Shown here: in pieces, positions 33,439-63,467 of the stretch | Numbering within the stretch: position 1 is the stretch's first letter | How the letters are laid out: each line of letters begins with the position of its first letter | Assembly (NCBI GenBank): GCA_033442325.1 | Contig: JAWQFM010000001.1 | Coordinates: 477,324-541,323, forward strand | Source of the DNA: Salpingoeca rosetta | Lineage: Eukaryota; Protista; Choanoflagellata | Direction: 5' to 3' | Length of the DNA: 64,000 nt | Program-made: the position numbers and the translations under genes | The notes under the pieces: model-generated | What the model was told of the DNA's origin: nothing | What the model saw: the letters and a program-made list of their open reading frames with translations, nothing else | The model's database searches: none

Positions 33439-36400
33439 TCACACGTGGGTAAAGTCCATGGTGGGGTTCTCCTCAAATGAACTGCGGCGATCGCCATCCT
33501 TTGCCGAAAGAGCAATAGCAGCTGGACTTGCGCCCATGTCGTACTTGGCTCTGTGCTTGCTGGTCATGCGAATGCACATGTACACTTGCACAATCAGCAT
33601 CACAATCAGCACTACCAGAAGAGCATCTGCAAAGATCAACGACAAAAAGGGAAGGGTATTTGTGAGCATACAGGTGAGTGAGTCGCACATGCAACTGATG
33701 ATGCCATAGTATCAAGCTGTTCATACAAATACCATCACCCCACATTCCAACGCTTACACGCACACACACACATTCACGCACACACAAACTCCATCAGCAC
33801 ACTTTACTCAGCATGACAAGCAAACAGTGCATATCGCACAGTAACGCCAACAACATGAATAACAACACGAACAACACCACAACATCTCGCATGTGCCCAC
33901 TTACAGTTGGGGATATCGTTGTCTCCGCTGCCGCTGCTGTTGCCCGTGGAGAGCATGGAATCCGTCACAACATCTGGCGTGGCTGTGCCGTTGCTGGACC
34001 TTGAAGCCGCCATCAGCGTCACCTCCACATTGGAGAGCGGTGACACGTGGTTGAGGATGCTGCCCTCAGCAATGTCGGTGCTGTTGCTGTCCGAAACGAG
34101 GGATTGGAGCAGGTCAGCAAGCGCAGAAGACGTCATGTCGTCGCCTGATCCACGGCGTCGCGTCAGCTCCTCAATCGTCGTTGGCAAGATGTATGTGTCG
34201 ATGGTGATGCCAACGGTGTAATCAAGCGGGTCCGTCGGTGAGATGGCAATCACCTGCACGCGCGCCATACTAATGCCGAGCGCATCGGCAATGTCCGTCT
34301 CAATGATGTTGGTCACATTCTCAAAGGCAGCAGATGTCGTGTTGTAGTACTCCTGCTCGAATGGAAGGTCAAGCATCAGGCCCGTCACCTGCGTTGTGGC
34401 AGAGGCCAGCTCCAAATTCGCAAACTCGAACAGGTGCGTCAGGTCCTGCTGCACGCGGTTGCCATACGGGTCTTCAACGGTTGTGAGCAGCACACGTGCA
34501 GACCGGGCGTTTACCTCGTCCCAGGAGAACCCGCGGCGAAGCGACATGGAGATGCGGCGGCCCTCGCACACAATCACCATGTTGGTGTTGTCAAACACGC
34601 GGTCCACCCCCGTCACATCCATGCGCGCACCAAACTGGAATGGTTTGGAGCACTGCACTGGCTCGTCAAACTCAAACGAAATGTCGTCGCCTGGCTCGTA
34701 CACGCCGTCGGCAGGCTCGGGGAATCCCATCACCTGCGGTGACGTGCGGTCAACGACACCAACAGCCGTGATGGAGTATTGCTCGTCAATGCCGTCGGGC
34801 ACCTCGTTGACGGATGCCTGGCACTGCGCGCGGATGCGAACTTGGTACTGGCCCTCGCTCAGCGACTCCACGCTCCACCACATGGTGACGTAGCCGTAGT
34901 CATTCTCAAGCGTGCGAATGTCCAGGGCCTCCTGGTCCTTGTCGCGCGCCAGCAGCCACACCGTGGACGTGACGGGCTTGTACTCAACGTACACGCCAGT
35001 GAGCCTGTCGTCCTCTGTCCACTTGCGCATGGCAAAGTCTGGGTTGAACGCGACGAGGCGAAGCTCGCCAGGCCGCTCCTCCTGCTCGTCCGTGGCCTGG
35101 TTCACAACAAACATGCCTTCCTCACCAACCTCGCCGACCAGCTGCACGGGTGAGCACGGCTGCAGGAACTCCACCTCCAGCGTCACGCGCACCTGCGCCG
35201 CGGCCTCGTCGCTCAGATACCCTGTCTCCGCCAGCCGCTCCTGCTCGCACAGCGACGAAAACCACAGGTCAACCGGGTCGTACTGGTAGGCTGACGGCCC
35301 ACGCTTCATCACCACTGTTATCTGCGTGGCACCAGGCTCAAAGCCAACGTAGTCGATGGGCGCCACCAGCGGCCACCCATTCACGCTGATCTCCAGGCCA
35401 TCCTGGTTCTGTCCGTTGACCGCGTACAGCTGCATGTACGTCGTGTAGTCACCATCGTTGCGCAGCACAAGCTCAAACACGGCGGGCTCGTTGGGCAGCA
35501 CGGGTGCCTCTGGGCGCTTCAGCACGGTCATGCCAGGCTGCTCCAGCGCAAGCGTGTTTTCCTCGTGCGGGCATGACGACTGGCCAGAGGCCGTGTGGAA
35601 CACGAGCGTGTTGTAGTCGGGGTGCTTGAATACTTGCACATCAAACACATCAAATGGGTCGGGGTCGCCAAGCTGTCATGGTGGTGGTGGTGGTGATATT
35701 AGTGTGAAGCGATCATCGCAAACATGCGGGTTGGCAGGGGGCGGTGGCGAAAATGTAAACACAAGCATACAGTCACATACGGACACACAGACACACACTC
35801 ACAAACATTCACAAACACGCAGGTACTTGCTCGCGCACCGTGAACTCGACGTGCTCCTCCTCTTGGTATCCTTCCTGGTCTTCGTGAGACGCAAACCAGT
35901 GGCCGATGCCGAGTGGGGTCACCGTAAATTCAGCACCGACACCTGCAACATTGAGGAGCGTCGAAGAGAAGAAATCGTGTCAGATCGAGAATGGTGCTGT
36001 TGGTATGGTTGCACCAAGTCTGCCAACACGATCACTGCAAGAATGCAGACACACACACACACACTGACCTGATGACGCAATGTCGAAGGAAACTGAGGTA
36101 CCACCCTGAAAGTCGTGCTCGCGCATGGTGCCATCCGTGACCGACTTGTCCACGCTCGTGTCGTAGGCAAAGGTGTACGTAGAGCCGCCACCAGAAAACT
36201 TGATCGTGTTGATGGCTTTGAGCCCAGTCTGCTGTGTGTCTGTGGCAGCCGTGTCGTTCAGCTGCAACGCAGACTCAATCAACTTGTGCGGGGCGAGGGC
36301 AATGCCCTTGTTCATCTGCCCGTTGATGTTGTTCTTGCCAGAGAGGCTGAAGGTATCGGGCGACCACAGCTGCTGAATGGCATTCAATTCGCCGTTTGCA

Positions 36401-39400
36401 GCCATGTCACGCACCTCCGTGTTGCGGGCGAGATTCTCCTCCCACGCGTCAATGGCGTTCTGCAGCTCCGCCTTCATGTCCTCCGAGTCGCCGTTGGCAT
36501 CGGCGTTGGCGAGGCGTGTGCGCAGGTCTGGCAGTTCCTTCGTCTCAATCTCGTACGCGGACAGCCACGCCATTGCCTCGTCGTTCTCGCCGCTCGCAAG
36601 CGACCACGTTGTCTCCGTTCGCAGCGTCACGTCGCACGTGTCCGTGTCAAACTCCACAATGTCCGTGTCCAGGAACATGACGTTGAGCGACGGCACGAGG
36701 AACATGTCGGAGCGCTCGCCAGCCAGCACCTCGGCCTCGCTGGTCGTCACGTCCAGGCTGAACGACCACACTTTCTCCGTGTCGTAGTTGTCGTTGCCGT
36801 CCTTCGTGCCAAACAGGTTCGTTGTATCGGCCAAGATGGTGGCAGGATCCGACTTTGCCGTCAGCAGGTTGATGCAGTTGGCAGCGCCAAGACCCACGCA
36901 CAGGTCAAGCGTGGCATCCACCTTGAAGGGCGTGATTTCGAGCCCAAAGAAGAACCCACCATACTCCTCGTACGTGTCGCTCTCAATCTTGTAGTTGGCG
37001 TACGTGTTCGAGTAAGTGGCGGAGGACAGGCCACCAGGCGGGTCCTGCACCACCAGCAGCGGTTTGTAGCGCGGAAAGGGGATGGACGCGCCCGTGCCCT
37101 GCGCAACATCGCCCGTCACAATCACATACAGTGACTCTGTCACGGGGTCGTGTGGCAGCCGCTGCATGGTGGCGCGGAAGAGCTTCGTGTGCGGGTGATC
37201 GCTGTCCAGTGCTTCTGGGTTGGTCTGCGGCGACCCAGTCAAGATGTTGAACTGCGCACGCGAGTTGGAGAGCGTATCACCGGACGCGGTGGATGTCGTG
37301 TCCATGATCACAGGCATCTCGCAGGGGTAGTAGCACCGCTCCAGCAGCTTCAGCTGCGAATTGGTGAGTGATGGCATTGTCTCGTTCAGCACGGCCACCG
37401 TGTCTGGGGACTCACCAAGGTGGTTCTCAATCTCAATCGTGCCCGGCACAATATCGCACGTGCCAACGCTGTTGCCGTAGTCCTCCGTCACCTTGATGGT
37501 TACCAAGGTCTGAGTGTTCTGCTGAATCACGCGCAGCGGCGTGCCGTCACTGTACGAGCAGCTGTGCGACTTCTCCGAGTTGAAGGAGATGTCCAGCTGC
37601 GGTGCTGGATGGTACTCGAAGCGCGCGTACTTGAGCGTGTTGTTCATGTTCTTTGGGTCACGCAGGTCGACGTACTTTGAGCGAGATTCGCCCAGCGTGG
37701 CGGAGAAGTAGCGTGTCATCTCTTCACGCACGTTGCCGTCCCGCACGAGCCGCTGAAACCGCACGGTGATGATCTGGGCAGGCAGGTCCCACTTGGAGAC
37801 GCGGTCCGAGGTGCGTTCTGTTCTCACCCAGGTCGGGCAGTTGTCGTAGCGGAACTCGATGGTGGCGCGGCCTAGCGTGAGGTTGCACTTGCCGCCCGCC
37901 ACGTCCACCGTCGCCGTGTCTGTCGTCACGTCCTTGAAGTCGATGCGTTCCCACAGCTTGTCTTCGGTGATGTCGTAGTATGGGGTGCTCACGTCCTGCG
38001 ACGTGACAGGATCCTGGCGGATGTAGTAGCCGCTGGGGGCGTTGGGCGTGTTCTCCGTGTACGTCACACGCTTAAAGGTGTGGGAGGAGTTGCCAAAGGT
38101 GACAAACGTGCCGACAGAGGCGCCCAGCACGGCCTCTGCCGTGTAGTAGCCCTGGGCATCGGTGATGGCGCAGCCAACAACATAGTCGCCCTGGTTGCGG
38201 TCGTACAGGCACACCTCCACGTCCTTGAGTGGACACCCGTTGCTGTACCCCTGGTGCTCCGTGCCCTCGATCGTGACGCGGCCAGAGAAGGGCATGGTTG
38301 TGGTGTCGCGGATGTCCACCTCGTGGTCGAAGCGAAGATGTTCGACGACAACCGTCGTCTCCGTGCACGCCATACCGCCACAGGAGAAGGTGTGCTCGAT
38401 GCTGCCCGTGTACTTGGAGAAGCTGAGCGTCATCGTCTCGTGCAGGGACGTGATCTGGTCGGTGATGATGTGGATCTCAAAGAAGCCGTCTTCGTCTGTT
38501 GTGCGTGTGCCCGTGACGCCGCCAACCTCGAAGCTGACCTCCACACCTTCCACAGCCAGGTGGATTTCCTCAGAGTCAATTGTCACCTGCCCGCGCACAA
38601 TCACCTCCCACTGGATCGTCAGGTACTTGCAGGTCGAGGCTGATGCATAGCCCTGTGTGGGGTGCGCAGTGGGATGGAGATAACAAGGGGAGGTGTGATG
38701 GGGTGATATGGCAGCGTGTGCAAGTGTCGTCGGTGAGAGGGAGTCAGATGATGGTGGAGGGTCAACAGCATGAGTGACATGCATGCGCGTAAACTGCACG
38801 CGCACACGGCATGTACACGAAGGACAAGCGAATAAGTTTGATTCACAGCCCACATTTCACGAGCACCTGCCACGCAACGCAATGCTACGCACGGAGCTGT
38901 CGTAGTCGACGGGGTTGGTGGCAACGACGCAGTAGCGACGCGACACGCCTGGTGCCGTGCCCACATAGCGCCGGAAGTAGGTGGGCAGCGCCTTCTCGTG
39001 GTAGCTGGTCGGGTTTGTGGAGGTCGTCGTGCGAGCGTTCGCCGTGGCACAGTAGCTGGTGCCGACAAAGATCATGGCGCAGTCCGAATCGTCGGAGCAT
39101 GCTTGCATGCAGTCGTCCTTGGACCCGTCAAGGATGTATGTGCCACTCACGCCTGTGTTGGAAACGGTCACAGCCTCGTACGACTCCACAGTGACATCAT
39201 CTTGGCTGACACTGGCAAAGTAGAGAAGCTTGAGCTGGTGGCACACGAGCCCTGATGTCGTCCGCTGCACGACGATCCCGAGGCACCACTCCGATCGCTC
39301 CTTGCACAGGGTGGCGCACTCGGAAGCACGCGTGATCTTGGTGGAGGTGCCGGTTGCGTAAACCACCTCGTCTGTATCCGATGTTGTAGTGGACTGGAAG

Positions 39401-41201: not shown

Positions 41202-41232
<31 letters not shown>

Positions 41233-42473
41233 ACACACACACACACACACACACTCAAGCAAGCACGATCACACACACACGCACACACACACACCGTCAC
41301 ACTCGGTGCCAGAGGAATCGAGGTCGCCGTATGGACAGTTGCAGTAGAAGCTGCCCTCCGTGTTGACGCAAGTTGCAGGTGAGACGCAGTTGTGCGTGCC
41401 AGTCGTGCACTCGTTGATGTCTGTCCACAGGATGAGAAAGAGGTGTTGGTGAGACTGTGAAGGCAAACACGGGTGTATGTGCACACTTGTGTGGTGGAGA
41501 GAAACTGCCAACTGCTCTTTTCTGAAATGCAGGGCAAGTACAGCAACAAGCAAACGCGTAACCAACCGTCACACGTGCGAGGAGAACCACTCCAGCTGCC
41601 TTCGTTTGAGACGATGCGACACTCGCGTGCGCCAGCAGTTCCGGACGAAGAAAGCTCATAACCATCATCACATGAATCGTACGTGCACTGGTCACCTACA
41701 AGTTCGTGCGGTTGAGTCGGGGAGTGAGTGAGTAAGTGAGGATTCGTGTGTGCGTGGGTGAAGGAGTCGCGGAGTAACGAGGTAACGTGACAGCGACAAC
41801 AGCACCGCGAACACACGATGGGCACCAGGATGGACTTGTGCCTACGCACACTCAACTGACCGAATGTTCCGCCGCAATCGCCCGTGACTGTGCCGTGTGT
41901 CAGACTGAGAGATCCGCAGCTCACACCTGTGGTGGAGACGGACGAGAGTTAAAGCGTCAAAGAATGAGTGTGTGTGAGGTGAGGAGGTGAGAAGCGTCGT
42001 GATAAGCGAACCGTGCAATGTAGTGACAACAAGTCTTCGCGCAGCAACACAACAGTCACGTGCAACTGGACGCACGCACACGTACGGGTGCATCCGTAGG
42101 TGCCGGAGCTGACGTAGCCGTCGCTGCTGTCACAGTTGATCTGCGCGTGCCAGGAACAGATGGAGCAATGAGCATGATGCGCGGTGATGAGGTTGGCAAC
42201 ATGGCGGGCAAAGACGGGTTGGTATTGAGGGAAGCCATACATGCTTCTGTGCTTGAAGGGACCATGTTTTGGTCAAGACAGCGGTGCTCTCACCTGACAG
42301 GTGTAAATTTGCCAGCGGCGATCTTCGTTGTCGTTGTCATGGTACGAAGCAAAGCCTGCAGGCACATACGCACATGCATCGCACATGAGTATTTGGGGTG
42401 CCTTGAGCATTATGGTCAAAATTTAACTTCAAGTGGTGCAATCAATGATCTAACTTCGACCCACATGCAGGTG

Positions 42474-42515
<42 letters not shown>

Positions 42516-44316
42516 CACACACACACACACACAGGTGCACACATGTACGCACCAGCGATAGCGTAGCCATCACGGACAGTGTATTCGAGACGGTCATCAA
42601 ACGTGTTCTCGTAGTTGCCCTTTGAGCAGTAGTCTGTTGGCGATTTCAGATGTATGACACGATGAATGTAACAAAGGCAACGTCAATAAGCAGAGAGCAG
42701 CTGGGTTGGATAGAGGATAGCAAGGTTGACTGATGAGGGAATAGTGTACTACGTGTAAAGAGTGACTAGACGAGGCAATGTGCCAGGAGCAACAGTGCCA
42801 CGTGCAATGTGCAAGAAATCAACACACAAGGTCCATGCACACACCGAGGGTGGCACCGGTGATGCGTCGACACCTGAACTTCCAGCGCCTGCAGTGAACA
42901 ATCCATGCACGGTGGGGACAGTGGATGAGAATGGATGCATGTCGCGGCAAGAAGGGTCAACGAGAACGAAAACAGTTGGCACATGGTGCAAGGCGCACAC
43001 AGCAAGCACAGTAACAACAGCAACAGCAGCAGCAGCAAGCTTCGGCATTCAAGTGGTACATCATTTCATACCGATCCTCCTGTGTAGCGTGTTTGTGTGA
43101 TTGTGTGTGTGTGTGATTGTGTATGATGTGAGCGGTCAAGTGGGAATGGTGAAAAGGTGCGAGTGGCTACGTGCAAGATCATTGTTCGTTCCCATCTATG
43201 CGCTGCAAGCACCAGGACGAGGACACGACGTGCAGCGCAAACATCAGGTGCCTTGCGTCAAGCACCCTCGACACAGAGCTGCAAGTCAGAGAGTGTGGAC
43301 AATGAGCTACGTACTCTGTTCTGTGTATGTGGATCGCGAAGGCACGGAAAAATGCGTAAAGGTAGCGAGAGGATAGGGGAGGGCGTATCAGTGAGTTGGT
43401 GAGCAGGGCACTCTTTTGATTTCGCGAGCAAGGCACAGAAGGAAGGCACACGCACGCACGCACAACAACAAGAATGGCATGTACGTTGCTGTGGTAGGAA
43501 TAAACGCCCTCGATGTAGTAGTTGGTGTTGCAGAGGTAATCAAACGAATGGTCTGTGGTGTGGAGAGGCAGCAGGGAACACGGTGAAGATGAGATCAGGC
43601 GCAGTGATTCGTGGAGCAGCAGCGTCAGTGACGTGAAGGCTTGAAGGGTTGAAGGGTTGAGGCAGACCCAATTGTTTGTCATCCAGCGTCATGCTAGTTT
43701 GGGGACTCACCAAAGTTGTTCACGTAGTCGGTGACGTAGGAGCTACCGTACCCGCTGCCATACCGGGAGCATTCAAACGCCCAACGACGATCCTCCCGAT
43801 TGTTGCTGTCATGCACGCATGGCGTACGCATGTGTGAGAGTGTGTATGCTATGTGTTGGTCGCACACTGTCCAGCATGAACACGAAGTGCCATCAGATCG
43901 GGCAAATCAGGCTCAAGCAGGTGCCCCTGACCTGTGGTAGGAGTCGATTGAGGTGATGCCTTTCCCTGACAAGCACCTGAAGCTCAGTGCGTCGTCCCCT
44001 AGAGTCCATGAGCGGAAAACCATTCACAACAACGGCCATGGTGAGGATGGCATTCATGGTGATGGCGGTGGTCATGAGAAGCAAGCTGACATCATTGTGG
44101 AACTCGTCGATAGAGAGGTACGCGCAACAACACAACAACACAACAACACAACAACACAACAACACAACAACACAACAACACAACAACACAACAACACGCA
44201 TGCACGCACGCACACACACGCACACACGCACAGTTGTTCTCGTAGGCGTGGGCAAACTGGTGCAAGGTGGTGACAAGCACGAACAGCATCAGTGCCACTG
44301 CTGTGGCATCCGCCAT
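33439..44316 (-). CDS. Giant type-I membrane mosaic protein: signal peptide, dermatopontin-like repeats, Sushi, Ca-binding EGF, FN3-like, Ser/Thr mucin, 2x PAN/Apple-like, large beta-rich region, SEA-like, TM, short tail
   Basis: Signal MADATAVALMLFVLVTTLHQFAHA. DERM motifs NREDRRWAFEC and DNEDRRWQIYTC. Sushi GDQCTYDSCDDGYEL..REC..WSGSPRTC. EGF DINECTTGTHNCVSPATCVNTEGSFYCNC. S/T tract 39380-39615. ECATLCKERSEWCLG and DCMQACSDDSDC. Long exons 36069-38652 and 33905-35672. TM exon ALLVVLIVMLIVQVYMCI, with the stop after FTHV. Confidence 0.85.
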
Positions 44317-45548
44317 CGCTGCTCTTTCTCTTCTGCGTCTCCGATTGCGGGATCCACGGATCGATCGCTGTTACTGCCAAAGGAAGATGAGACGACGGAG
44401 GTGGGGTGGGTCTTCTGCTTCTTCTCCTCGCACACTGTGGCCTGCTTGCTTGCAAGCACTTGGCCTTGGCGTGGATGGGGAAGGGGCTGCGCCTGTCGGT
44501 GTGACCTGTGTGTGAGGGCTGTGGTTCTGTGGCCTGGCTTGTGGCTTGGTCTTTCGGGTGTGATCTGTGGAGTGTGTCTCTTCTGGCTCTTGTGGTGTGA
44601 CGTCGCGGTGGCTTGAGGAAGAACAACGTTGCAGCAGGGAAAATGAACCTTTGACCGACCACAAACCACAAGACAGAGCAGCCCACGCGGGGCAACCGCT
44701 TGGCCTGCAGGTTGTGTGTGGGTTGCGCTCGAGCCTACCTCAAGCGATGAGGACTGCATGTCTTCCTTGCTTGCTTGGTGGTTGTGCCTGTGGCGTTCCT
44801 CCTTTCACACAAGCACACTTTTGCGGGCACCCTGCACACAACAACAGCAACAACAACCCCGTCTTGATTGTCGTCATCATTCTGGGACAAATAATTTGTA
44901 TTCTCGCTGAACGGAGCTTGTGTTTTGCATGCAGGCAAGCCGCGTCGTCGTCACAAAACACCCACGCACGCCAAGAACGCACGCCAAGACAACGCTCTTC
45001 ACTTTCAGTGAGGAGGCGCGAGGACACTAATTTTTGCTGGCGTGGCCAGTTGGCCGTCGCAATGAGAAAAAGAGGACGACGGGAGGACAGAGGACTGGGG
45101 CAAACTGGACAGTGGCGACACCCAAAACGAAAAGCGTCTACCACGCGCAAACCGTAGGATGTGTTGGCTCATGCCACCTCACGAGTTAAACAAGCCACCC
45201 ACTCAACAACAACACGACGCCGCACGTCCCAGAAATCAAGCAAGCAAGGGTTCGCTCACACTGGTGCCGTTGTGCTGCTGTTTGGTTTCTTGGCTTCTTG
45301 GAGTGGTTGCATTCGCACACCCTGATTCATTTTCCCTCATGCCCAGCCATCCTTCAGTTCTGAACCCAAGAAACCAGCAGAGTCTCTTGTTTGCTGTTGC
45401 CAACCACCCACCCCCCCCCCCCAAACACACACACACAACACACACACACACACACAGACCACGACCCTCTGCCTTCTTGCGAACACTGATTCCTCCACTC
45501 TACTCTCTTCTGCTGCGTGCCAGCCTTCTTGCTTGCAAGCACGCCAAG

Positions 45549-45655
45549 ATGGCACACGCCGTGCTTGTTTTCGCCGTGTTCCTGCTGGCAGCCGCAACTC
45601 AAACACAGGCCTACGTCAACTGCTGGGGTAATAAGTCTGGCGGTGGGATCTGCTA

Positions 45656-45727
<72 letters not shown>

Positions 45728-48599: not shown

Positions 48600-48643
<44 letters not shown>

Positions 48644-51507: not shown

Positions 51508-51599
<92 letters not shown>

Positions 51600-51897
51600 T
51601 CTCTCCCTCTCTCTCTCCCTCTCTCTCTCCCTCTCTCTCCCTCTCTCTCTCCCTCTCTCTCCCTCTCTCTCCCTCTCTCTCCCTCTCTCTCCCTCTCTCT
51701 CCCTCGCTCTCTGTACGCTCTGTGTGTGTTTACAGTTGGAGACGAGTGCACCGTGTCCTCGTGCGACTCTGGGTACTGGTTCTCTGACAGCGGCAGCAGG
51801 ACGGTCACGTGCACAGAAGTCAACGGCGAGCGCATGTGGTCCGGATCTCTCAACACATGCGAAGGTGAGCAGGCAAGGAGAAAGGAATACAGTTGCT

Positions 51898-51931
<34 letters not shown>

Positions 51932-52273
51932 GCGGTGCACACCAGAGCTTCGCCTCCTCCATCTGCGAAAATCGGCAGAGACTATCTCCATTCGCAATGC
52001 TCACCACAACCCCGCCCCCACTGTGGTTGTCCGTATTTCATGGTGCGTGCAGCTGTGACGTGTATGGCGCTGTCGCTGAATCATGGCTCCGTGTCTGGCT
52101 CGTGCTCCGGCACTGTCGGTATGTCATCAGAGCAGTTCAATCAATGCCAGTAGCACTTGATGCGTTGGGGTTCACACGCAGCTGCTGCTTTGCTCCATGC
52201 CTTGCGAGTGCCACTCCATCGCCACCTCGACGCCCTCTCACATTGTGCGTGAATTCGAAATGCGTGCAACCAC

Positions 52274-52332
<59 letters not shown>

Positions 52333-55300
52333 CCAACAACAACACCACCAACAACAACAACAATAACAACCAGGCGACCAGTGCACGTATTCGGGCTGTG
52401 ACGACGGCTTCCTGCTGTCGTCTGAAGGCACAACAACGCGCACATGTACTCAGAACGAAGACACCGCAAGCTGGAGCGGCGACGCCAAGAGCTGCTTCGG
52501 TTCGTGCATGGATACGTTGTAGTGGATGATGACATGGGCCACTCTACAGCTGCAGTTGTTTCCTTTGCTGACAGTTGCACGTTAATCCCGGCTGTCTTCA
52601 TCAACACTCACTCCTCGCCTCTTCTGTCTCTTGTTGCGTACAGAACTGCTGGAAGGGGCGTCGGGGGAGACGTTCACGCTCTCTTGCGCTTCCGGCCAGG
52701 GCTTTGTTGGCGTCACCTCAGATGCCCAAAACTCGGCTGTGGGAGGTGTGCTGTTCGTTTGCTTGTTGTGTGTGTGTGTGTCATTTGTGCGCGTCGCTTG
52801 TACGCACACTCGTATGCACACTTGCACGTGTGCAGCCTCAAAAGTTCTTGCTCATGTGCGCGAGCAGTATGTTGTTACAACTTCCCTACTTGCTGTTGTG
52901 CTGCGCTCTCCTCATCTTCGTCTTCATCTTCGTCGTCTCATCGATGATTGTTGTGTTGTTTCGATTGCATCTTCGCATTGCCGTGAACAGACCGCCGCGA
53001 CTGGGGCTTTGCCTGTGATGATGTTGGCAGCAACGACGCCAACCGTGTGTGGAACATGCACGAGGAGATCAACTCTGCTCGCGGCAGCTTTGACTTCACC
53101 TGCCCTCATGACTCATACTGTACGTCTCATGGGATCATCATGTCTTTGCATCTGTGTGCGTGTGATTGTTGTCTGGTTGTATGCATCCGTGTGCGTGAGC
53201 GACCATGTTGTGTATTTGCGGTTACATGTGCACTTTTGACTGTGATGGCTTCTTGACCCCTTCCATCTTGTTTCTTGCACACCTGCTGCAGACATCTCTG
53301 GTGTGACGACATCATACCTTGACAGCCCCAACGACCGCCTGTGGGGGTTCCAGTGCTCGCTCATCTTTGGCGCCACACTCGGCAACTGCCAGCTCAGCAG
53401 CTCTTACAGCGCCAGCACCTTCAACTTTGACTACGCCGTCCCCACGGGACACGTGCTTGTCGGTGAGTGCGTGAGTGTTTGTGTGATGAGAGTGTGTGTG
53501 CGGGGGTGAGTTTGAGTACGCGTACATGTGTACATGTGTGAGTGAGTTTGAATACGCATGTGGGTTGACGATCGTGCCTTTCTCTCGTGTTGCTCATGCT
53601 TCAAATTATGCATGCAAACACGCACGTCGTCTCTGTCCATCTTTCTCCATTCAACTGCAGGTGTCAAGTCGTCGTACTCCACATCCTCTGGCTCCCGCTC
53701 CTTCCAGTTTAGGACCTGCGAGGTACCCACCACATGCCATCGTGTGTGAAAGTGTGCGTGCGTGCGTGATGCTTGGAAGAACTGCGTGAACAGATTATGT
53801 GTTGACGTCCACTCATTCAACCCGCTGCACAATATGCTGGATATGAACGTGTTCAGGTCCAGTGTAGGACTGGACAGGAATACTTTTCCACTGGTGGTGC
53901 AGAGTGCCAGCGTGAGTGTGGCTAAGATCGCGATCATGCGCACTCCCAGAGAGTGAAGCTGTTTGTGTGCTTGCTGACACAATAGTGCCTTTCAGGGAGG
54001 TTGAGCGTGTGGGCTGTTCTCATCTCGCTTCAACTGTTAGCGCGCCCCCTCACGTACACCATCACACCCCTCACCACACTGTGCTTGTCTGCGCAGGTGT
54101 TGGCTGTGGAGCGCTGACGCTGGAGAATGGCGCTGTGTCGGGTTCCTGCGATGGCAACATCGGTACGAATGCGTGGAGTGTCTGCCCATGCTTTGGTTGC
54201 ACTCGTTCTCATTTTTTCTTCTCTTTCTCCATCTACAGCAGCAGCTGTTGTTGTTACATCCCTTGCTTGCATCTTATCATGCGACGCCTGGCGGTGTTGA
54301 TGATGACGCCGATGTTCGCTCACCGTCACTGCACTGCACGATGACTGCCACCTGCCAGGCGATCAATGCGACTACGAGCAGTGCAACGGCGGCTACACGC
54401 TCTCAGAGAGCGGCAGTTCCCAGCGCGAGTGCGTTGTGGTCAATGACAAGCCACAGTGGTCGGGCCAGGCCAAGACGTGTGAACGTAAGTCAAAGCGTGC
54501 ATGCGTGCTTGTGTGAGCTTTGGGGGTGCATGTGGCACCGCTTATGTGCACATCTGCTCTTGCGTCATTGCTCGATTGACAAACACGACTCGCTCACTCA
54601 ACTCACTCGCTCACACACGTACACACACTCACTCACTCACACGTGCACACACACTCTCGGCTGCTGTAGGCGTGACAACGACGACCGCCGAGCCAACAAC
54701 GCTGGATGTGTGCAGCGTGTACAAGACTGCGCCCAACCCAACAACGTGCCGCTCACAATGCGACTACTACGACAGAGGCGATGCAACCTTCAGCAAGTCT
54801 TACGGCGAATGCTCCAACGTGTGTACACAAAGTGTATCTGTATTGATGTGTTTGTGTGATCATGGTACCCGTAATTGCATGACCTTTCACTGTCGTTTGT
54901 GGTACTGCTGTCCCGTCGTTTCAGTCACGCTGTGCACTGTGAAATCCTCAGCATCTGACACGCACGCACACACACGCTTACACGCGCACACTGCATACAC
55001 GTGCAACCACCACTCTTGTGACTTTGCTGACCTGTTCGTTCAGGTGTGCACGTGCGGGTGCCGACGTCGCTTCAAGATCACCAAGACGGAGGAGCGGTGC
55101 AGTGCACACTGTGCAGACCAGGGTCTGGCCGCTGCGTTCCGCGACATGCACCTTGGCTGCCGAAAGGTGGGTCAATTGTCTTTGCTTTCTTGTGTTGGCT
55201 CTGTTTATTTGCCTCGGTGTACCGTTTTGTGTGTGTGTGTGTGTGTTTGTGGTGGCTTTTCAAGTATCTGTATTTGCACAGTGTATCATTTGCCTACGTT

Positions 55301-56914
55301 CGTACAGTGTATCGCATGCCTACATTTGCACAGTGTGCGCGTGCGAAAGTGTGCACTCCTCGTACTACAGTGCCTGCTCAACCCATTCTCTCATTGTGAT
55401 GTTTTTTTTTTTTTTTGATTCCCTGTGCACATCACTCGCTGCTCCTCACATGATCCACCACCTTGTCCCAGGTGTGCCTGTGTGTGGATGTGGATGCGCC
55501 AACGACGCCAGCTGGTGGTGCGCTGACAGAACCTGATGCTGACGAGAACGCGCTCGACTTCCCATTCAGCGAGTACAACTACGAAGAGACGTTCACAGGC
55601 GCGATCACGGGCAACAGCAACCCGCGTCGCTTCTCAACTGCATTTGAGACCAGCGCCACCATTGTGAACATGGAGGGCGAGTCGATGCTGCAGTGCCTGC
55701 GGTACTGCGATGCAGACCCGGATTGTCTCGGCATCTTCGCCAGCGTCGTCAACGGCATGCTTCGGTGCCAGCTCATGAGCGACCTTGGCTCCGGCACGGG
55801 CGTGTCCACACAGATTGTGTCCAAGTCGCTGACCAAGGGCACCCAGCCGTCTGCTGTTGGGACGGCAACGCCTTCCATTGCCAGCGCCATCCAGACGGTT
55901 GTTGGCAACGGCGGCACGACGTGGGACTCGTCAGCAACCCTGCTCAACACGGGTCTCAACCAACCGGACTGCGTCACCTTTGACGGCGAGCACGAGATGC
56001 TGGTGACGATGGTGTCCGACCACCGCGTCATCCGCGTGGACTTGCGCACGCGCACGTCATCCCTGGTTGCCGGCACGGGCGAGATGGGCGCGGACGGTGT
56101 TGGCGGCGCTGCCACGAGCGCACAGCTGAACCGCCCCCGCTGCGCCATTGCCGATGTGGAGGGCAACGTGTACATCACGGAGGAAGGCAACCACCGCGTG
56201 TCTGTTGTCGATGTGGTGAGCAAGAAGCTGTCGGTGTTTGCTGGCACCGGTGATGGCGGGCACCGCGGGATGGGCGGTGTGGCGACGGCTGCGCAGATCC
56301 ATTCGCCACAGGCCATGGCATGGACAGAGGAAGGCAACCTGCTGTTCTCGGACGAGGAGAACCACGTCGTGTACATGGTGAACCCGCACACCACCATCAT
56401 CTCCGTTGTCGCCGGCACGCCGCGGGTGGCTGGCGATGAGGGCGACGGGCAGCTGGCGATTGGGGCGCGCCTCAACATGCCTGCAGGCATTGCCGTGTAC
56501 GACCACATGCTGTACATTGCAGACAGCGGCAACCACCGCGTCCGCGCAGTGGATCTGTACACGCAGGTCATCACCACGGTGGCCGGCACCGGTGTTGCTG
56601 GGTTCAGCGGCGATGGTGGCCTGCCCACGGACGCGCGTCTCGACACCCCGCGTGGCGTGGCCGTGCACTCGTCTGGCTCGCTTGCCATTGCAGACAGCGG
56701 CAACCACCGCGTCCGCGAGTTCAACATTGGCGTTGGCGCGGCCGGCATCATCACCACCACCGCTGGTAACGGCCAGCGCGGGTACAACGGTGACGGCATG
56801 GTGGCCACAGACACGGCGCTCAACTTCCCGACGGGCATCACCTTCTCCCCGCTCACCGACAACGTCCTCTTTGTCGACCGCCGCAACCGCCGCGTCCGCC
56901 AGATCTGGGCTTGA
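45549..56914 (+). CDS. Secreted mosaic protein: signal peptide, dermatopontin-like domains, 7 Sushi/CCP modules, Cys-rich linker, PAN-like, NHL beta-propeller
   Basis: Signal MAHAVLVFAVFLLAAATQTQA. Repeated EDRRWNFAC / EDRVWRFEC / EDRRWKVSTC / ADRRWRYYC / NDRVFSYQC / NDRLWGFQC. Paired Sushi exons 48945-52499 and 54097-54484. Terminal exon 55472-56914 has QCLRYCDADPDCLG and NHL repeats (LNMPAGIAV..LYIADSGNHRVR). No TM seen. One Sushi exon is out of frame (see findings). Confidence 0.85.
51509..51712 (+). repeat. Compound (CA)n-(CT)n-(CCCTCTCTCT)n intronic microsatellite
   Basis: Seen directly; representative of dozens of CA/GT tracts across the window. Confidence 0.95.
52274..52370 (+). repeat. 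(AAC)n microsatellite abutting a splice acceptor
   Basis: The AAC run ends directly at CAG|GCGACC (Sushi exon at 52374). Confidence 0.9.
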
Positions 56915-57534
56915 TTGTGTGTGCAGCCGACAGTAAACACGCAGTTGGAAGGATGTTGATATGTTGATTGCTTTCACGCTCTGAACTCTTGATCTGACCA
57001 TTCAACTAATTCAAGCTACCCTCAACTTCATCAGTCATGAGGGCTCAAGAGAGCATTGCATGTCTTCTTCTTCCTCCCCCCTCCTCCTTGTTCACCACAC
57101 ACTCGCTCTGCTTGTAACGCAACGGCTCAATGAATCAAAACAATCTTGCTTGCCTTGTTCTTCTTGCTTTCTTCATGTCTTCGTGTCTTCGTGCTGGACT
57201 CTTCAGTTCTTCAGTTGTTCAGTTCTTTTGTTCTGTTTGTTCCGTTGTTCACTAATTCTCCTCCACTTTGTTCTCCTTACTTTTGCTGCTCTTCTTCCAT
57301 TCACACGCCCCGACCGAGCTGGTGCTTGCTTGTCCTGCTTGTTTGCTTTTGTGTCATACACAACACATGGAAGCATTGAACCTTTGAAATTAAGGAGCAT
57401 GTCGTACAACTTGACACGTGAAGAAAACAGAAGAGCGACAAGTAAGCAGAGGCAGCGTCACAGTACGAGGTTTGCGACTGAATTCAGTTTTTCGACATTC
57501 TTCACCCGCAACAACAAGCAAGCAAAGCAACAAC

Positions 57535-57959
57535 ATGCGGCTCACATCAGCGGCGGCAGTTGTAGTGGTGGCAGTGGCCTGCTGCTGCGTGTCGACGACA
57601 CACGCTGACATCACGGAGGAATACAAGCGCGTAAGCAGAGCAGCCTGTTTGTCTCGATAATGCTGTGTGTGTGCGTGTGTATATGTGTGTGACAAAGCCT
57701 TGTGTGCACGTTCATACCGCATTGAGTTTTTGACTGCGTTACATGCCACCTGGTTGCGTATGACACGAAACGCAGGCTGCGCTTGCCTTTCAACAAGGTC
57801 GCCTGGGCGAAGCTGAAGCCATCTTCGAACAGGTGTTGCCTGCTATCCTTGGTGCTGTTGGTGCTGATTGATGCTGACTGTGCTGCTGTTGGTAATCTTG
57901 GGCGCCTTTTCTGCTGTTTAAAATCGCTATCATCTGTCCACACCCAACCACGAATCGAT

Positions 57960-58010
<51 letters not shown>

Positions 58011-61000
58011 GAATGCTTGCAGCTCTCGCAACTGTTTCCGGACGTGTCGGCACCATTTGTCAACCTTGCTGTCGTCAACGAGAAGAAGGGCAACGTAAGC
58101 GAACACCCACCTGTGATGGTGCTTGGCTTAATGGGGTTGTTTTGTGTCCACCACTGTGTCGCTCATTGTCATGTTTGTAGCTCATGTTCGGTCACATGTC
58201 CGCACGCGCAAATGCTGCTGCCTCAGGTGCTGAAGGCCTATCGGCTCTTTGTGCAAGCGCGCAACAACTTCCCTGATGATTATGAAGTGGCCATTTCCAC
58301 TTGCCGCTTTGGCGCCAACCTGCTCAACACGAAGGTGTGCTTGCTCCTGCGTACGAGTTAGTGTGACTGCTTGTCGATATGCCGTCCGTGTAGAAGGCGT
58401 TCTGCAAGCCACGTGTACTCTGTGCTCACACTCATGACACCTTCATGCATGAATGAAACCTACACAGTTGGCTGTGAGCCCCAAAATGGACTCTGACGTG
58501 TTCTTGGAGGCATGCAAAGACGCAGAAAGGTACAACAAATTGCACAAGCCACCGCACGTTGTCCCCTGCATGTGTGTGTGTGTGTGTCTGCGTGCGTGTT
58601 GTGTTGTGCATCGTTCTCGTGGCTGATACTCGCTGTTGTGTCATGACACATTGCCCACGAATCCTTAACACCACGACTGTACCATTCTATCCTTCCAGGC
58701 TTCGGCCCAACGAGCTCGAGGCAACCAGCATGCTCGGCAACATTTACGTTCTACTCATGCGCTTCCATGAGGTCTTCAAGGCGTTTTGTCTGTGTATGTG
58801 TGCGTGTGTGTGCGTGTGCGTGTGTGTGTGTGTGTGCGTGCGTGTGTGTATGTGTGCGTGTGTGCGTGTGCGTGTGTGTGCGTGCGTGTGAGTGTATGTG
58901 TGCGTGTGTGTTTCAAAGGCATGTGCTTCGAAACCTTGTGTTGCGTGTTGGATGGCACGGGTGCATTATGTCTCACCATCTCACCAACCAAACCTACCTG
59001 TCAGGCCATCCCCATCCTCATGCGAGCGGAAAAGATTGCACGCAACGACGAGGCCTCACACGTTCAAGTGCTGGTGCGCACTCGCCATCATGCGTGTCAA
59101 TGCTGAGGCGTCTCCCGTCCTACCCGTTCTCCTTCATTCCTTTCACTTGCCCCATGCCATCCACACACACACACACACACACAGGCAGACACACCCACAC
59201 ACATTCAAACACGCACACACGCACACATACACACACACACGTACATTCAAACACGCGCACATTCACACATTCAAACATACATTCAAACACACATTCAAAC
59301 ACACATTCACACACATGCAGACGAACATTGCACTTGCGAATCTTCGTGGTGGGATTGTGTCTGGCGCCGTTGACGCCGTGGAAACGCTTCTCACGCGATA
59401 CGGCCATCTCCCAGGCATCTCCTCCACAGCCGGTGGCGTGCGAAGGTGCATCACACGCAATGCCTTGCGTTGTTCCGTCTCTGCACTGCTCGTTTGCTTT
59501 GTTCGTGTTGTTTGTGGTATTTGTGTTGTTTGTGGTGTTTGTGTTGTTTGTGTTGTTTGTGGTGTTTGTGTTGTTTGTGTTGTTTGTGTTTCGTGATTAC
59601 TCACTCAAGATTCGACCACATAACCTCCGCAACAACCGCAATACGCTCGTGTGCATGTGCATATGCGTCTATGTGTGTGTGTGTGTTGATAGCATTCTTC
59701 TTCCTTACGATGAAGAGTCGGTTCGTCTGCTCACCACGTCGCTTGTCGAGGTAGTGAGCACCGGGTCACCCTGCCCGCGCACACTCACATTGACACGTGC
59801 ACAACTTTGCTCAAACACGCCCTGTCACCTCTCATTCCGCAGTGCATTCAGGTTTTACAATCACATCCACACGCATTCATATCCGCAACCATCCCTCCGC
59901 ACGCAACTGTCCCCCCCCCCCTGCTTTGCTTTGTCATTCTCACCCACATATCACTCTCCGCCAATACGCGCACCCTGCAGTTTGCGTCGACAGTGGACGT
60001 GTCTGATGAGACGTGCCAGAAGGGACGCTGGTCCATGGATATGGACTGGACAAAGGGGAAGAAGCATGTCAAGAAGGTTCGCGCATGTTGTGTGTGGTTG
60101 AAGTGCGTGAGTGTGGCAACGGATTTGCTGATATGCATGCAGGGTGAACAAGCTGCACGTGAGTGCGTGATTGTTGCTTCCCGCGTTCTGGCCCTCTTGT
60201 CTGTTTACTCGCTTTCATATTTCAACACACTCACACACTCTCTCAAACACACACGCCCACACACACTCTCTCAAACACACACGCACACACTTCTCCCTCA
60301 ACGGTATTGTGCTGCTACATCAGACGCTCCTGAACCGAGACACCGCCGGCAGCAAGTATTCGTCATCAGAGGAGGCACATCTCGTGGGCAGCGCCCGCAA
60401 CGAACTCAAGCCGTACTACACATCGTACCTGGAGAGGTCCATCTACTTCCTCGCCATCTCCAAGGCTGTCCTGTGGAAGAGTGGGGCGCAGCTCTCCACG
60501 CCGTGTGTCTTCCACACCGCTGCACAGCTCTGGAATGCAGAGTTTACCCAGGCCGTCTCCGACGCACAGTGAGTCCTCAAGTGTGGTGTGTGTGTGTGTG
60601 ATATTGCGTTTGCGTGTGCACGTGTGTGTGTGTGTGAGCATGTGATGCATGTGTGTCTGTCTGTCGGTACATTGTTCACTGCATTGCTTGCTGCGCACGT
60701 TTGTGTGGTGTGTGTGTGTGTGTGCGTGCACGTGTGTTTGTGTGTATGTTAGCCTGTCTGTCCGTACATTGGTCACTGCATTGATTGCTGCGCACGGTCA
60801 TTTATTTGTGTGTTTTCACGGGTGTCATGTGCTTCGTTTCGTTGATCGAATTGGCACTGTCTTGCAACCTCGGCCTCTTTGGTTTCAACTCCTCCGTTCA
60901 CAACCGTCGTGTCGCGTTGTCCTGCTCATTTTGTTCATGTGTGTGCAGGTACATTCAAACCAAGCACATCAAGCACCGCGTGGCTTCAACCCTTCCACTC

Positions 61001-62560
61001 AAGAACATGCGCAACTACTACCACTGGATGCTTGAGGTGCGCCCAGGGAATGTGTTTGTTATGTGTGACTATGTGTGTAAGTGTATGTTATGGTGTGCTT
61101 GCACGTGAATGTGACTTTCTAATACATATGTGGCCGAACTGTGTATGCTTGCAACCGTTCGCTTGAACGTGGCACCTCTCCCTGTCTTGTTGACATGTAC
61201 CTGATCTCTGTTGCTTCCAACCACAACCACCTATCTTTTCAATTTTTCCTTTTCGCAGGGCATGGTGCGTTTGGTGTACATTCAAGAACTTGTTTTGGAC
61301 AAGCCTAGCTTTGACGACGTGAAGATTCTTGTGCCGGACACGCACACCGCACACGTTGCACAGTCCCTTGAGGTTCGTTCAGCCTCTCCTTGAGATGTCC
61401 TTCGTGCACATATGAACGTACATGAAGCAGTGGCTGCTCACGCCAACGCTTGCACCAACCCATGTTCCTCATGGCATCACCATGTCCCAATGCGCACACC
61501 CAACAGCTGCTGCACATCCCCAAGAACCGCATCTTGTCTTATTCTGCCACGGACAGTCAGCGCTGGGTCTTTGATCAAGACTTTCTCCTCATCGACTGGA
61601 TGCAACCAAAGGGTGCGTGGTATCTTGTGCTGATACAGTGTGTGTGAGTGAGTGTGTGTGTGTGTGTGTGTATACTTGTAAGCTTCGGCGCGCGTGTATG
61701 CGTACGTGATTCTGTNNNNNNNNNNNNNNNNNNNNNNNNNNNNNNNNNNNNNNNNNNNNNNNNNNNNNNNNNNNNNNNNNNNNNNNNNNNNNNNNNNNNN
61801 NNNNNNNNNNNNNNNAGTTCCGAAAACCCAATTCCCGCCACCTTCTCGTACTCCAACACTTTCTCCACCTGATACCTGCAAATCCAAACATTTTTACCCA
61901 GGAGATTAATATCACACTCCACCCCGCCAAGCATATTCAGATAATCAACCCTCTAAAAAAGGAGTACATCTCTGTAAGTCACAGTTTGTGCCAGTACGTC
62001 CAAACCTATATGGGTGTGTGCGCGTGTCACCGCGTGTGTGTGTGTGTGGGTGTCTCGGTGGGTGTCTGGGTGGCTGTGTGGGTGTGTGTGTGTGTGTGTG
62101 TGTGTGGTGGTGTGTGGTGGTGTGTGGGTGGGTGTGTGGGTGGGTGTGTGGGTGGGTGTGGGTGTGCGCTCTAAGTGTGTGTGGGTGTGTGCAGTGTGTT
62201 GCATACCCAGGTGTGCTCAACACCATTGCGTGTTGTGTCGGGCCAAACCAGACCCCAGATCTCACACATGCACACATACACACATGCACACACGTGCACG
62301 ACCAACAAACAACCAAAACAACTCCCCAACCCGTGTTGCATTTGATGTGCAGTTGATTCAATTGGCTCGCTGTCCAAGGACGTGTGGTCTCCGTTTTATC
62401 CGCCGCGCGAGGGCATCTTGAAACTCCGCGAACGTCTTCGTGGCGCTCTGATGGAGTTTGATCCAGACTACGACCAGAAGTCGTCGGGCGTTGTGTTCAT
62501 CTCGCGCGACAAAACAAAAGCTGTCCGCTCCATCACAAACCAGGACAAGCTCATTGGTGC

Positions 62561-62592
<32 letters not shown>

Positions 62593-63467
62593 TTGTATAC
62601 TTGTGTGCTTGCGCGCGCGCGTGTATGCGTACGTGATTCTGTGCTTGTGCATGCTCGGCAGTGGTTTGTTGTCGCGTTGCTGCTTGAGTACCACATTGTT
62701 TCAGCAACACCACGGGCTCACTTGCTTGTCCTTTCCATACACGCGCACACACCGCCTGCTAACTGCTGGTTCTGACTCCGACGCCACCACAAACACCACC
62801 ACCGCCGACGCCACCACCCAACCACCACCACAATCATGGCGCAGCTGCGCTTGCGGAAGCGTTTGGGGCGGATCGCGTCACCATCCACCACGGGACAGAG
62901 CCGCTGCACGAGCAGCTGGCCATGTTTGCAACGGCAGACTTGATCCTCGGCTCACACGGCGCAGGCCTGAGCAACGTGGTGGTGGCCAAGCCAAACACGC
63001 CCGTTGTCTTCTTCCCGCTCAAGCCGCACGTTGACCGCACGTTTGGGCACCTCTGCACCGCCCTCAACCTCCCGCAGTGGGTGTTGTCAGACGTGTCCTC
63101 GTACTACTACGGCAACTTTGGCGACCTGTCCACTTTGCAGATCAAGGCCATCGTGCGCACTGCCAAGAAGGCGTACGCACATGTACACGAGACTGAGCGC
63201 ACCGGTGCTGCTGGCGATGATGATGATGATGATGATGGCAATGACGGCGACGCGTTGAACGTTGATGACTTTGCTGCGGATGAGAGCTCGGCCGCACTGA
63301 ACGAGCACGCGTCCTCACCAAGCGCACCAGCTTCTTCATCGGCCACGACCAAGAAGAAGAGGAGGAAGAGACAGGACAGCGACGAGGCGAAGACGGCCAC
63401 GAAAGCGCGCCGCTCGCGTCGCCAGCGCCGCAGGAGGAAGGCAGCGCCCACACGCACGGAGCTGTAG
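57535..63467 (+). CDS. Signal peptide + TPR-like + GT61 (DUF563) glycosyltransferase with C-terminal RTEL
   Basis: Signal [27 protein letters not shown]-like exons ([20 protein letters not shown]; [35 protein letters not shown]). GT61 motifs [20 protein letters not shown], and [22 protein letters not shown]. Ends in RTEL-stop. The gene spans an assembly gap. Confidence 0.82.
61716..61815. other. Assembly gap (100 N)
   Basis: Run of N inside the GT61 gene. Confidence 1.

Follow-up and report, generated by a model that had tools for sequence, protein, structure and literature searches.

Divergent genes for an anchored and a secreted dermatopontin-domain protein form a seven-copy cassette in the choanoflagellate Salpingoeca rosetta

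A stretch of 64,000 nucleotides (nt) from contig JAWQFM010000001.1 of Salpingoeca rosetta (assembly GCA_033442325.1, positions 477,324 to 541,323 of the forward strand; hereafter the window) bears two large genes, PTSG_09549 (gene A) and PTSG_09548 (gene B), which diverge from a common intergenic region and code for proteins with related dermatopontin-like (DERM) domains. The window holds one copy of a two-gene cassette that is present seven times in the genome; its two genes are probably transcribed together, and their products would act together outside the cell. Support for a two-gene functional unit comes from the anatomy of the locus, from the co-duplication of both genes, from their compact promoter, and from the pair-specific co-expression of sister cassettes. 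A third gene, for a glycosyltransferase of family GT61, lies beyond gene B. An earlier note, made from the letters of the DNA only, had described genes A and B as dermatopontin-Sushi paralogues, one product being anchored and the other secreted, and had counted the glycosyltransferase as part of the same candidate adhesion or recognition locus. Its observation of the anatomy was confirmed, and its interpretation was partly supported.

Gene models were produced with a purpose-written protein-to-genome spliced aligner, which was exact on the own locus of a public paralogue, and RNA contigs from two runs confirmed four introns of gene B and three of gene A. The start codons and gene ends proposed earlier coincide exactly with the NCBI gene ranges (Table 1). 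The DNA is GC-rich, with short introns rich in GT/CA microsatellites, and from 35549 to 64000 the window is 100% identical to GL832980.1 of GCA_000188695.1, a run of Ns included.

The product of gene A (2304 amino acids (aa) in the NCBI model, about 2330 in the model made here) is a predicted type I membrane protein, in which a signal peptide is followed by a DERM domain, a Cys linker, a Sushi-like module, a calcium-binding EGF domain (EGF_CA) and an Ig/FN3-like region, and then by a Ser/Thr-rich mucin stalk, a PAN-like region, a giant beta-sandwich ectodomain, a transmembrane helix and a short tail. The ectodomain comprises ~1,650 residues after the Ser/Thr-rich stretch, and the single transmembrane helix lies near residue 2240. 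Pieces of the DERM exons matched the Pfam DERM profile weakly and collinearly (24.7, 20.9 and 17.4 bits; gathering score 28.3); when the spliced model was compared with a DERM profile made from Pfam-verified paralogues, a full-length match of 179.6 bits was obtained. Two introns of this domain (43932/43805 and 43711/43552) were seen in RNA contigs. Between 43485 and 42888 an RNA contig implies a 13-nt insert for which no location in the gene was found; the model uses an 8-nt exon there, and this junction is uncertain. As for the Sushi-like module, no Pfam Sushi match was obtained at E ≤ 1 in four A-type paralogues, and the module of an A paralogue is 47% identical to the Sushi units of B (E 2e-19).

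Gene B is predicted to specify a secreted protein with a signal peptide, DERM1, DERM2, a Cys linker, a Sushi array, DERM3, another Cys linker and a further Sushi, after which come two Cys-rich exons and an NHL propeller. No transmembrane helix was found in it beyond the signal peptide. Its protein (P0170) reached 470.8 bits, in three domains, against the Pfam DERM family (PF14704). There are about seven Sushi modules: residues 370-700 scored 68.4 bits over three stretches against Pfam Sushi (PF00084; cut-off 20.7), and B-type paralogues scored 25-34 bits. The best solved relatives of the propeller are teneurin-like proteins (E 3e-66).

The two proteins thus have paralogous heads, with one DERM domain in A and three in B, and differ at their C-termini, A ending in its single transmembrane helix and tail and B in the propeller, as the earlier note had it. 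Its description of the Sushi modules as identically split also agrees with the exon lengths, which are 62/55/66/129 nt in A, 62/55/66/126 nt after the third DERM of B, and 62/49/66/114 nt after the second, the Sushi introns being in phase 1. Between the PAN-like regions of A and B homology was not detectable (E 0.49).

DERM matches occur at more than 20 places in the genome. The large exon of gene A, whose best relative is PTSG_07019, has 14 genomic copies, seven of a single-exon type and seven of a three-exon type. The NHL exon of gene B has exactly seven, each head-to-head with one A gene of the single-exon type; the seven A-like genes of the three-exon type are unpaired. Public annotation gives the same arrangement at other cassettes, the members of a pair bearing consecutive gene numbers, and the cassette loci that were compared align collinearly with the window over the full length of A and B. 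Trees built from the large exon of A and from the NHL exon of B returned one topology, ((C12,(C19,C23)),(C4b,(C24,(C1,C4a)))), with 81-100% support, where C12, C19 and so on denote cassettes. Seven tips allow 10,395 rooted topologies, and the match therefore indicates that A and B were duplicated jointly, on six occasions. The DERM domains group by type (A, B-D1, B-D2, B-D3) and not by locus, each clade broadly following the pair tree, and Microstomoeca roanoka has a B-type protein with all three DERM domains (P0167); the split between A and B is therefore older than the cassette copies. Concerted evolution of the DERM heads within a pair was also considered, and is ruled out by this grouping by type. 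The earlier note had allowed that numerous dispersed paralogues would make the adjacency a simple local duplication; paralogues are indeed many, yet the copied unit is the pair itself, and the divergence of A- from B-type DERM domains is older than the duplications.

Because each gene has a 5′ untranslated exon, the untranscribed interval between them is at most ~208 bp, even though the ATG codons of the window pair are 1.2 kb apart. In six cassettes the ATG-to-ATG distance is 0.45-1.5 kb, and no promoter motif common to the cassettes was found beyond chance in six intergenic regions. Runs X4/X5 yielded RNA contigs of A as well as B, those of gene B being of low depth (1-3), and runs X9/X10 yielded neither. 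Raw RNA reads of X9/X10 on a 6-kb stretch fell only on CA/GT microsatellite introns (43300-43499 and 47100-47299) and then ran into unlike sequence; they are due to repeat cross-mapping and not to expression.

Stage expression values are those that Fairclough et al. 2013 (PMC4054682) give in supplementary tables; of the eight samples, three are from thecate cells, one from swimmers, three from rosettes and one from chains. The within-pair correlation of log values was 0.98 for C4a, 0.99 for C4b, 0.96 for C24 and 0.96 for C19, all of them sister cassettes of the window pair, and the true A/B pairing ranked top of all 120 permutations. In C4b, the eight samples in table order read 28, 28, 41, 17, 2, 4, 17 and 2.5 for gene A, and 29, 25, 37, 15, 2, 6, 17 and 2.9 for gene B. 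Most cassettes were upregulated in thecate (substrate-attached) cells; for gene A of the window, values of 11.7, 1.7 and 2.5 in attached cells compare with 0.2-0.5 in colonies (log2 4.4, P 7e-16). With a single sample per condition, C24 and the window A gene peaked in thecate cells with Algoriphagus only (sample AtA), and C19 and C23 in those with mixed bacteria (AtB/AtAB). None of these genes was present in the mSphere 2025 supplements. The available expression points to thecate cells, not to rosettes; thecate cells upregulate many choanoflagellate-specific genes without an assigned role (Fairclough et al. 2013, PMC4054682). The co-regulation proposed earlier thus gained the seven-fold head-to-head arrangement, the matching trees of A and B, 5′ ends at most ~210 bp apart and the co-expression of four sister cassettes in its favour; the part that gave A and B the roles of receptor and ligand, or of tether and matrix, stands as a conditional reading, weighed below.

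The closest copy of the window cassette is on chromosome 4 (PTSG_11194/13151). Comparison of these twins revealed a mosaic, in which the gene bodies of A and B hardly differ (synonymous divergence, dS, 0.01-0.2; 99.7% identity for the NHL exon of B), while the DERM domain of A, the promoter region with DERM1-2 of B, and the membrane-proximal end of A (the last 230 residues) are old, dS being 0.66-1.4 and the introns unalignable. Homology between window and twin ends at the stop codon of gene B. The simplest reading of the mosaic is gene conversion that would have homogenised the bodies and spared the heads. The linked block of heads and promoter is what keeps the two cassettes distinct. Ratios of nonsynonymous to synonymous divergence (dN/dS) computed in windows along the genes were 0.09-0.36 between the twins, which lends no support to positive selection on the heads; by this measure both sets of heads and all other parts appear to be under purifying selection.

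Structure predictions bear on what the heads and the stalk might do. A model of the DERM domain built from 19 sequences (predicted local distance difference test, pLDDT, 94.9) shows beta-hairpins repeated three-fold, which form a beta-prism. Among solved folds it comes closest to the Vip3 toxin beta-prism domain (Z 7.0 and 6.7), with a weak likeness to jacalin-type lectins (Z 2-3); no solved structure related to DERM by sequence was found. A predicted fold of this kind fits a ligand- or glycan-binding head, a fit that proves nothing.

The ectodomain of A has no Pfam family match. Its 361 homologues are found in choanoflagellates, diatoms, a dinoflagellate and Paulinella, and they carry differing N-terminal heads (DERM or, in other protists, JmjC/cupin, WD40 propellers, fn2 plus F5/8C, MAR), which suggests that the ectodomain is a general stalk presenting variable heads. 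In the AlphaFold2 model the 847-residue exon of A forms a beta-sandwich chain (pLDDT about 90 over residues 1-510). A fold search with the model of the large exon gave only generic likeness to adhesin, pilin, mastigoneme and alpha-2-macroglobulin domains, and neither a named look-alike in the ESM Atlas nor a relative by sequence in the PDB was found for it. The family is unnamed, and its members include proteins of the diatom Seminavis, the dinoflagellate Durusdinium, Paulinella and many metagenome contigs; a D-P-P-G motif at residues 528-531 of the large exon is nearly invariant. In S. infusionum one protein (P0006) joins DERM, a propeller, PAN and an A-type ectodomain. It was tried as a lead to a fusion of A and B and set aside as a weak argument, its propeller being unrelated in sequence to the NHL propeller of B.

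Taken together, these data would fit a scheme in which every cassette consists of two divergent genes driven by a very short shared promoter, the A and B of each cassette being expressed jointly, for the most part in thecate cells. In the product of gene A, a DERM beta-prism head would be carried by Sushi/EGF modules, followed by a mucin-like stalk and then by an extended beta-sandwich chain anchored in the membrane, and the product of gene B would be secreted, with its three DERM domains, Sushi array and NHL beta-propeller. In a surface coat or attachment matrix, A may then serve as the partner fixed to the cell and B as the one that is soluble or lodged in the matrix, and the DERM heads might bind a glycan, a matrix ligand or each other. 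Direct binding of A to B is put forward only tentatively, as the less expected outcome. The further idea that the seven cassettes are matched lock-and-key pairs, each keeping its own co-inherited heads and promoter while gene conversion homogenises the bodies, as between the window cassette and its twin, and each deployed according to cell type or bacterial environment, seems very unlikely.

Several observations weigh against joint action of the two products. Fold matches were only of middling strength, and a complex prediction for the C12 pair, combining the A head (P0162, residues 25-300) with DERM1-2 of B (P0168, residues 25-370), gave no verdict for or against. In the expression tables, the stage profile of the window pair covers gene A alone, the pair correlations being those of sister cassettes; gene A of the window is weakly expressed, at about 12 units at best and some ten-fold below its twin; expression of the C12 A gene leans towards swimmers and colonies; and A and B of C23 are poorly correlated (r 0.25), which may reflect reads mis-assigned between the near-identical C23 and C19. 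In gene B, the b-exon of the third Sushi as assembled, if included, shifts the frame and leads to a stop at codon 549. The window copy may therefore be impaired through this frameshift and the weak expression of A. Lastly, promoter sharing in a compact genome yields co-expression without functional coupling.

The frameshift and the low expression also suggest that the window cassette could be decaying, gene B being a pseudogene or giving a truncated or shortened product, and the whole a low-activity twin of the strongly expressed cassette on chromosome 4. The 17-bp deletion, the need for the public model to skip the exon at 50425-50539, the ten-fold difference in A expression listed in the tables and the low depth of the B contigs all favour such decay. 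Yet skipping that exon keeps the frame and an intact open reading frame, more than 950 downstream codons are intact, the NHL exon is all but identical to that of the twin, and the heads appear to be under purifying selection. Moreover, only one of three 31-mers sampled across the 17-nt site was found in any of 17 runs, the other two being in no public run, whereas elsewhere in the locus the share reaches ~0.9. This hints that the deletion is an error of the assembly, although it is not decisive; the NCBI record for the site is the same assembly and hence not independent. Decay of the window copy is accordingly regarded as unlikely, though still to be reckoned with.

That the two products act independently would be a different explanation for the whole set: A at the surface and B in secreted form could be co-regulated lectin-like proteins that bind outside targets, for example glycans of bacteria or of the substrate, and never each other, the cassettes serving as a diversified recognition or capture repertoire. 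The modelled resemblance of DERM to the beta-prism binding domains of lectins and toxins is compatible with this, and so is the agglutinating activity of DERM-family members; one S. rosetta paralogue is labelled hemagglutinin/amebocyte aggregation factor at NCBI, the Microstomoeca B-type protein also has SUEL lectin domains, and different cassettes peak, in the tabulated samples, in attached cells fed different bacteria. This alternative, however, does not require that both genes and their arrangement be kept in all seven copies, and it leans on weak fold matches (Z 2-7) and on one sample per bacterial condition; it is held to be possible but on the doubtful side. Less probable again is a purely historical origin of the adjacency, in an old inverted duplication followed by segmental duplications and gene conversion, with the shared promoter accounting for the co-expression. 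Bidirectional promoters are common in compact genomes, the A and B heads are paralogous, the mosaic dS between the twins shows gene conversion, and a retrotransposon lies beside one cassette. Against an accident of this sort, the tracts of homology stop at the ends of the two genes and the flanks differ among cassettes, both partners persist in every cassette, although divergence has gone as far as 45-52% identity, and both genes show the signature expected of purifying selection. A two-gene unit whose products act together outside the cell is thus the reading preferred here.

The genes flanking the pair vary by cassette: GT61 in the window, a kinase at C24 and a copia-like element at C12. The GT61 gene begins 620 bp past the stop codon of B, as proposed earlier, and its product has an N-terminal signal/anchor, a TPR-like stretch (57535-58340) and the GT61 domain, the last exon scoring 34.2 bits against PF04577 (cut-off 27; profile positions 83-137). 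PF04577 is the family of EOGT and POMGNT2; the window gene shares with it this last-exon match and the N-terminal signal/anchor, and differs by the TPR-like region and the charged tail ending in RTEL. The tail is long, acidic and then basic, and RTEL differs from a canonical KDEL-type signal. The GT61 exon occurs once in the genome and is absent beside the other cassettes examined, where a kinase or a retrotransposon is found instead; the gene is an unrelated neighbour outside the cassette, and the earlier suggestion that it belongs to the system was not borne out. The assembly gap in one of its introns begins ~100 bp past a GT donor at 61613, and in an ab initio model the exons ending at 61612 and starting at 62353 join in frame. 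The public GT61 model spans the gap, with an intron of 740 bp or more that exceeds most others here, and a small hidden exon within it is conceivable.

At C12, a copia-type retrotransposon (RVT_2, Pol_BBD; L027:21965-26023, NCBI GL832970.1) lies directly downstream of the A gene, and is a possible vehicle for cassette dispersal. The near-identical pair of cassettes at G000 C23:1153001-1188000 and C19:918001-952000 shows 95-98% DNA identity, with homology that stops at the gene ends. DERM genes unrelated to the A/B cassette occur on G000:C22 at 494912-499821 and 533643-534086; one of these places has matches on both strands, and another has a complete DERM domain (137 bits) within a single open frame of 691 aa.

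Table 1. Features of the window, with positions numbered from its first nucleotide
Feature	Position	Strand	Basis
Gene A coding sequence, PTSG_09549	44316 to 33439	-	NCBI gene range; spliced alignment to paralogues P0160 and P0162
Gene A 5′ untranslated exon, spliced to 44491	44738..44873	-	RNA contigs X4/X5; CT..AC joint 44491/44738
Gene A DERM domain, ~7 small exons	42294..43998	-	Collinear Pfam DERM matches; spliced-model match; RNA contig introns
Gene A Cys-linker exon, 55 nt	42086-42140	-	Spliced alignment; exon pattern
Gene A Sushi-like module, exons of 66 nt and 129 nt	41861-41926, 41567-41695	-	Spliced alignment; homology to B Sushi units
Gene A calcium-binding EGF exon	41295..41420	-	Pfam EGF_CA, 40.2 bits
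Gene A giant ectodomain (exons 36069-38652, 35839-35942, 33905-35672)	33905..38652	-	Spliced alignment
Shared bidirectional promoter interval, ≤ ~208 bp between outermost RNA-supported A and B exons	44874..45081		RNA contigs
Gene B 5′ untranslated exon, spliced to 45523	45082..45248	+	RNA contig; GT..AG joint 45248/45523
Gene B coding sequence, PTSG_09548 (P0170), 1505 aa, 32 coding exons in public model	45549..56914	+	Window exons reproduce P0170, 1505/1505
Gene B DERM1 and DERM2	45916..48571	+	Pfam; DERM profile
Gene B Sushi array	48907..52499	+	Unit of 66-nt exon plus 111-129-nt exon; phase-1 introns
Gene B Sushi-3 b-exon, defective, 115 nt	50425..50539	+	Without 17 nt (after 50474) present in chromosome-4 twin
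Gene B DERM3	52644..53722	+	Pfam; DERM profile
Gene B last exon with six-bladed NHL propeller	55472..56914	+	Pfam NHL, 71.6 bits; TEN_NHL, 62.1 bits
Mosaic stretches relative to chromosome-4 twin	33982-43562, 48692-56917		Comparison with G000:C4:135685-158673
GT61 gene, 731 aa (NCBI)	57535..63467	+	Pfam PF04577; single copy
Assembly gap (N run) in GT61 intron	61716..61815		Present in public assembly too

A strictly paired, seven-fold set of this kind offers concrete candidates for the building of an attachment matrix or for the recognition of surfaces or bacteria, and its pair-specific expression makes those candidates testable. The preservation of a two-gene unit through six duplications argues for selection on linkage over chance adjacency. 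For the idea set out in the earlier note, the consequence is that the glycosyltransferase falls outside the unit, and that the expression data favour attachment over rosettes.

Matriano et al. 2021 (PMC7971027) had already tabled both genes, under 'DPT/Ca2+-EGF' and NHL and with PF14704 for PTSG_09549, as candidates for horizontal transfer; that work deals with the same genes without the head-to-head pairing, the seven cassettes or the co-duplication. A literature search on the gene identifiers and on the pairing found no paper describing the latter, and the pairing, the seven-fold cassette and its co-duplication are new here. With animal dermatopontin and the invertebrate DERM agglutinins (PF14704; Limulus hemagglutinin/amebocyte aggregation factor) the heads share family membership, D-R-R-W repeats, conserved cysteines and an extracellular location. 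The animal proteins, however, are small (about 20 kDa), single-domain and secreted, whereas here the DERM heads belong to mosaics of ~2300 aa (A) and 1505 aa (B). The propeller of B matches TEN_NHL, but B has neither the YD shell nor the toxin domain nor the transmembrane helix of teneurins, and is not a teneurin. In a Foldseek search the ectodomain of A resembled giant adhesins and fibres (the Marinomonas ice-binding adhesin 4p99, Gram-positive pilins and the Chlamydomonas mastigoneme 8wa2) with E-values of 1e-8 to 1e-10; giant adhesins share with A the layout of a head on a long anchored stalk, although template-modelling scores (TM-scores) are low, there is no sequence relation, and the A family is eukaryotic. 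Dictyostelium provides a parallel for the arrangement itself in tgrB1/tgrC1, divergent neighbours with a shared promoter that form a co-expressed kin-recognition pair within a multi-copy family of surface proteins. Both Tgr proteins are anchored, Ig-fold and strain-polymorphic, whereas the cassette described here has one secreted partner and other folds; what it has in common with tgrB1/tgrC1 is membership of a multi-copy family and the head-to-head order of two genes across a short shared promoter.

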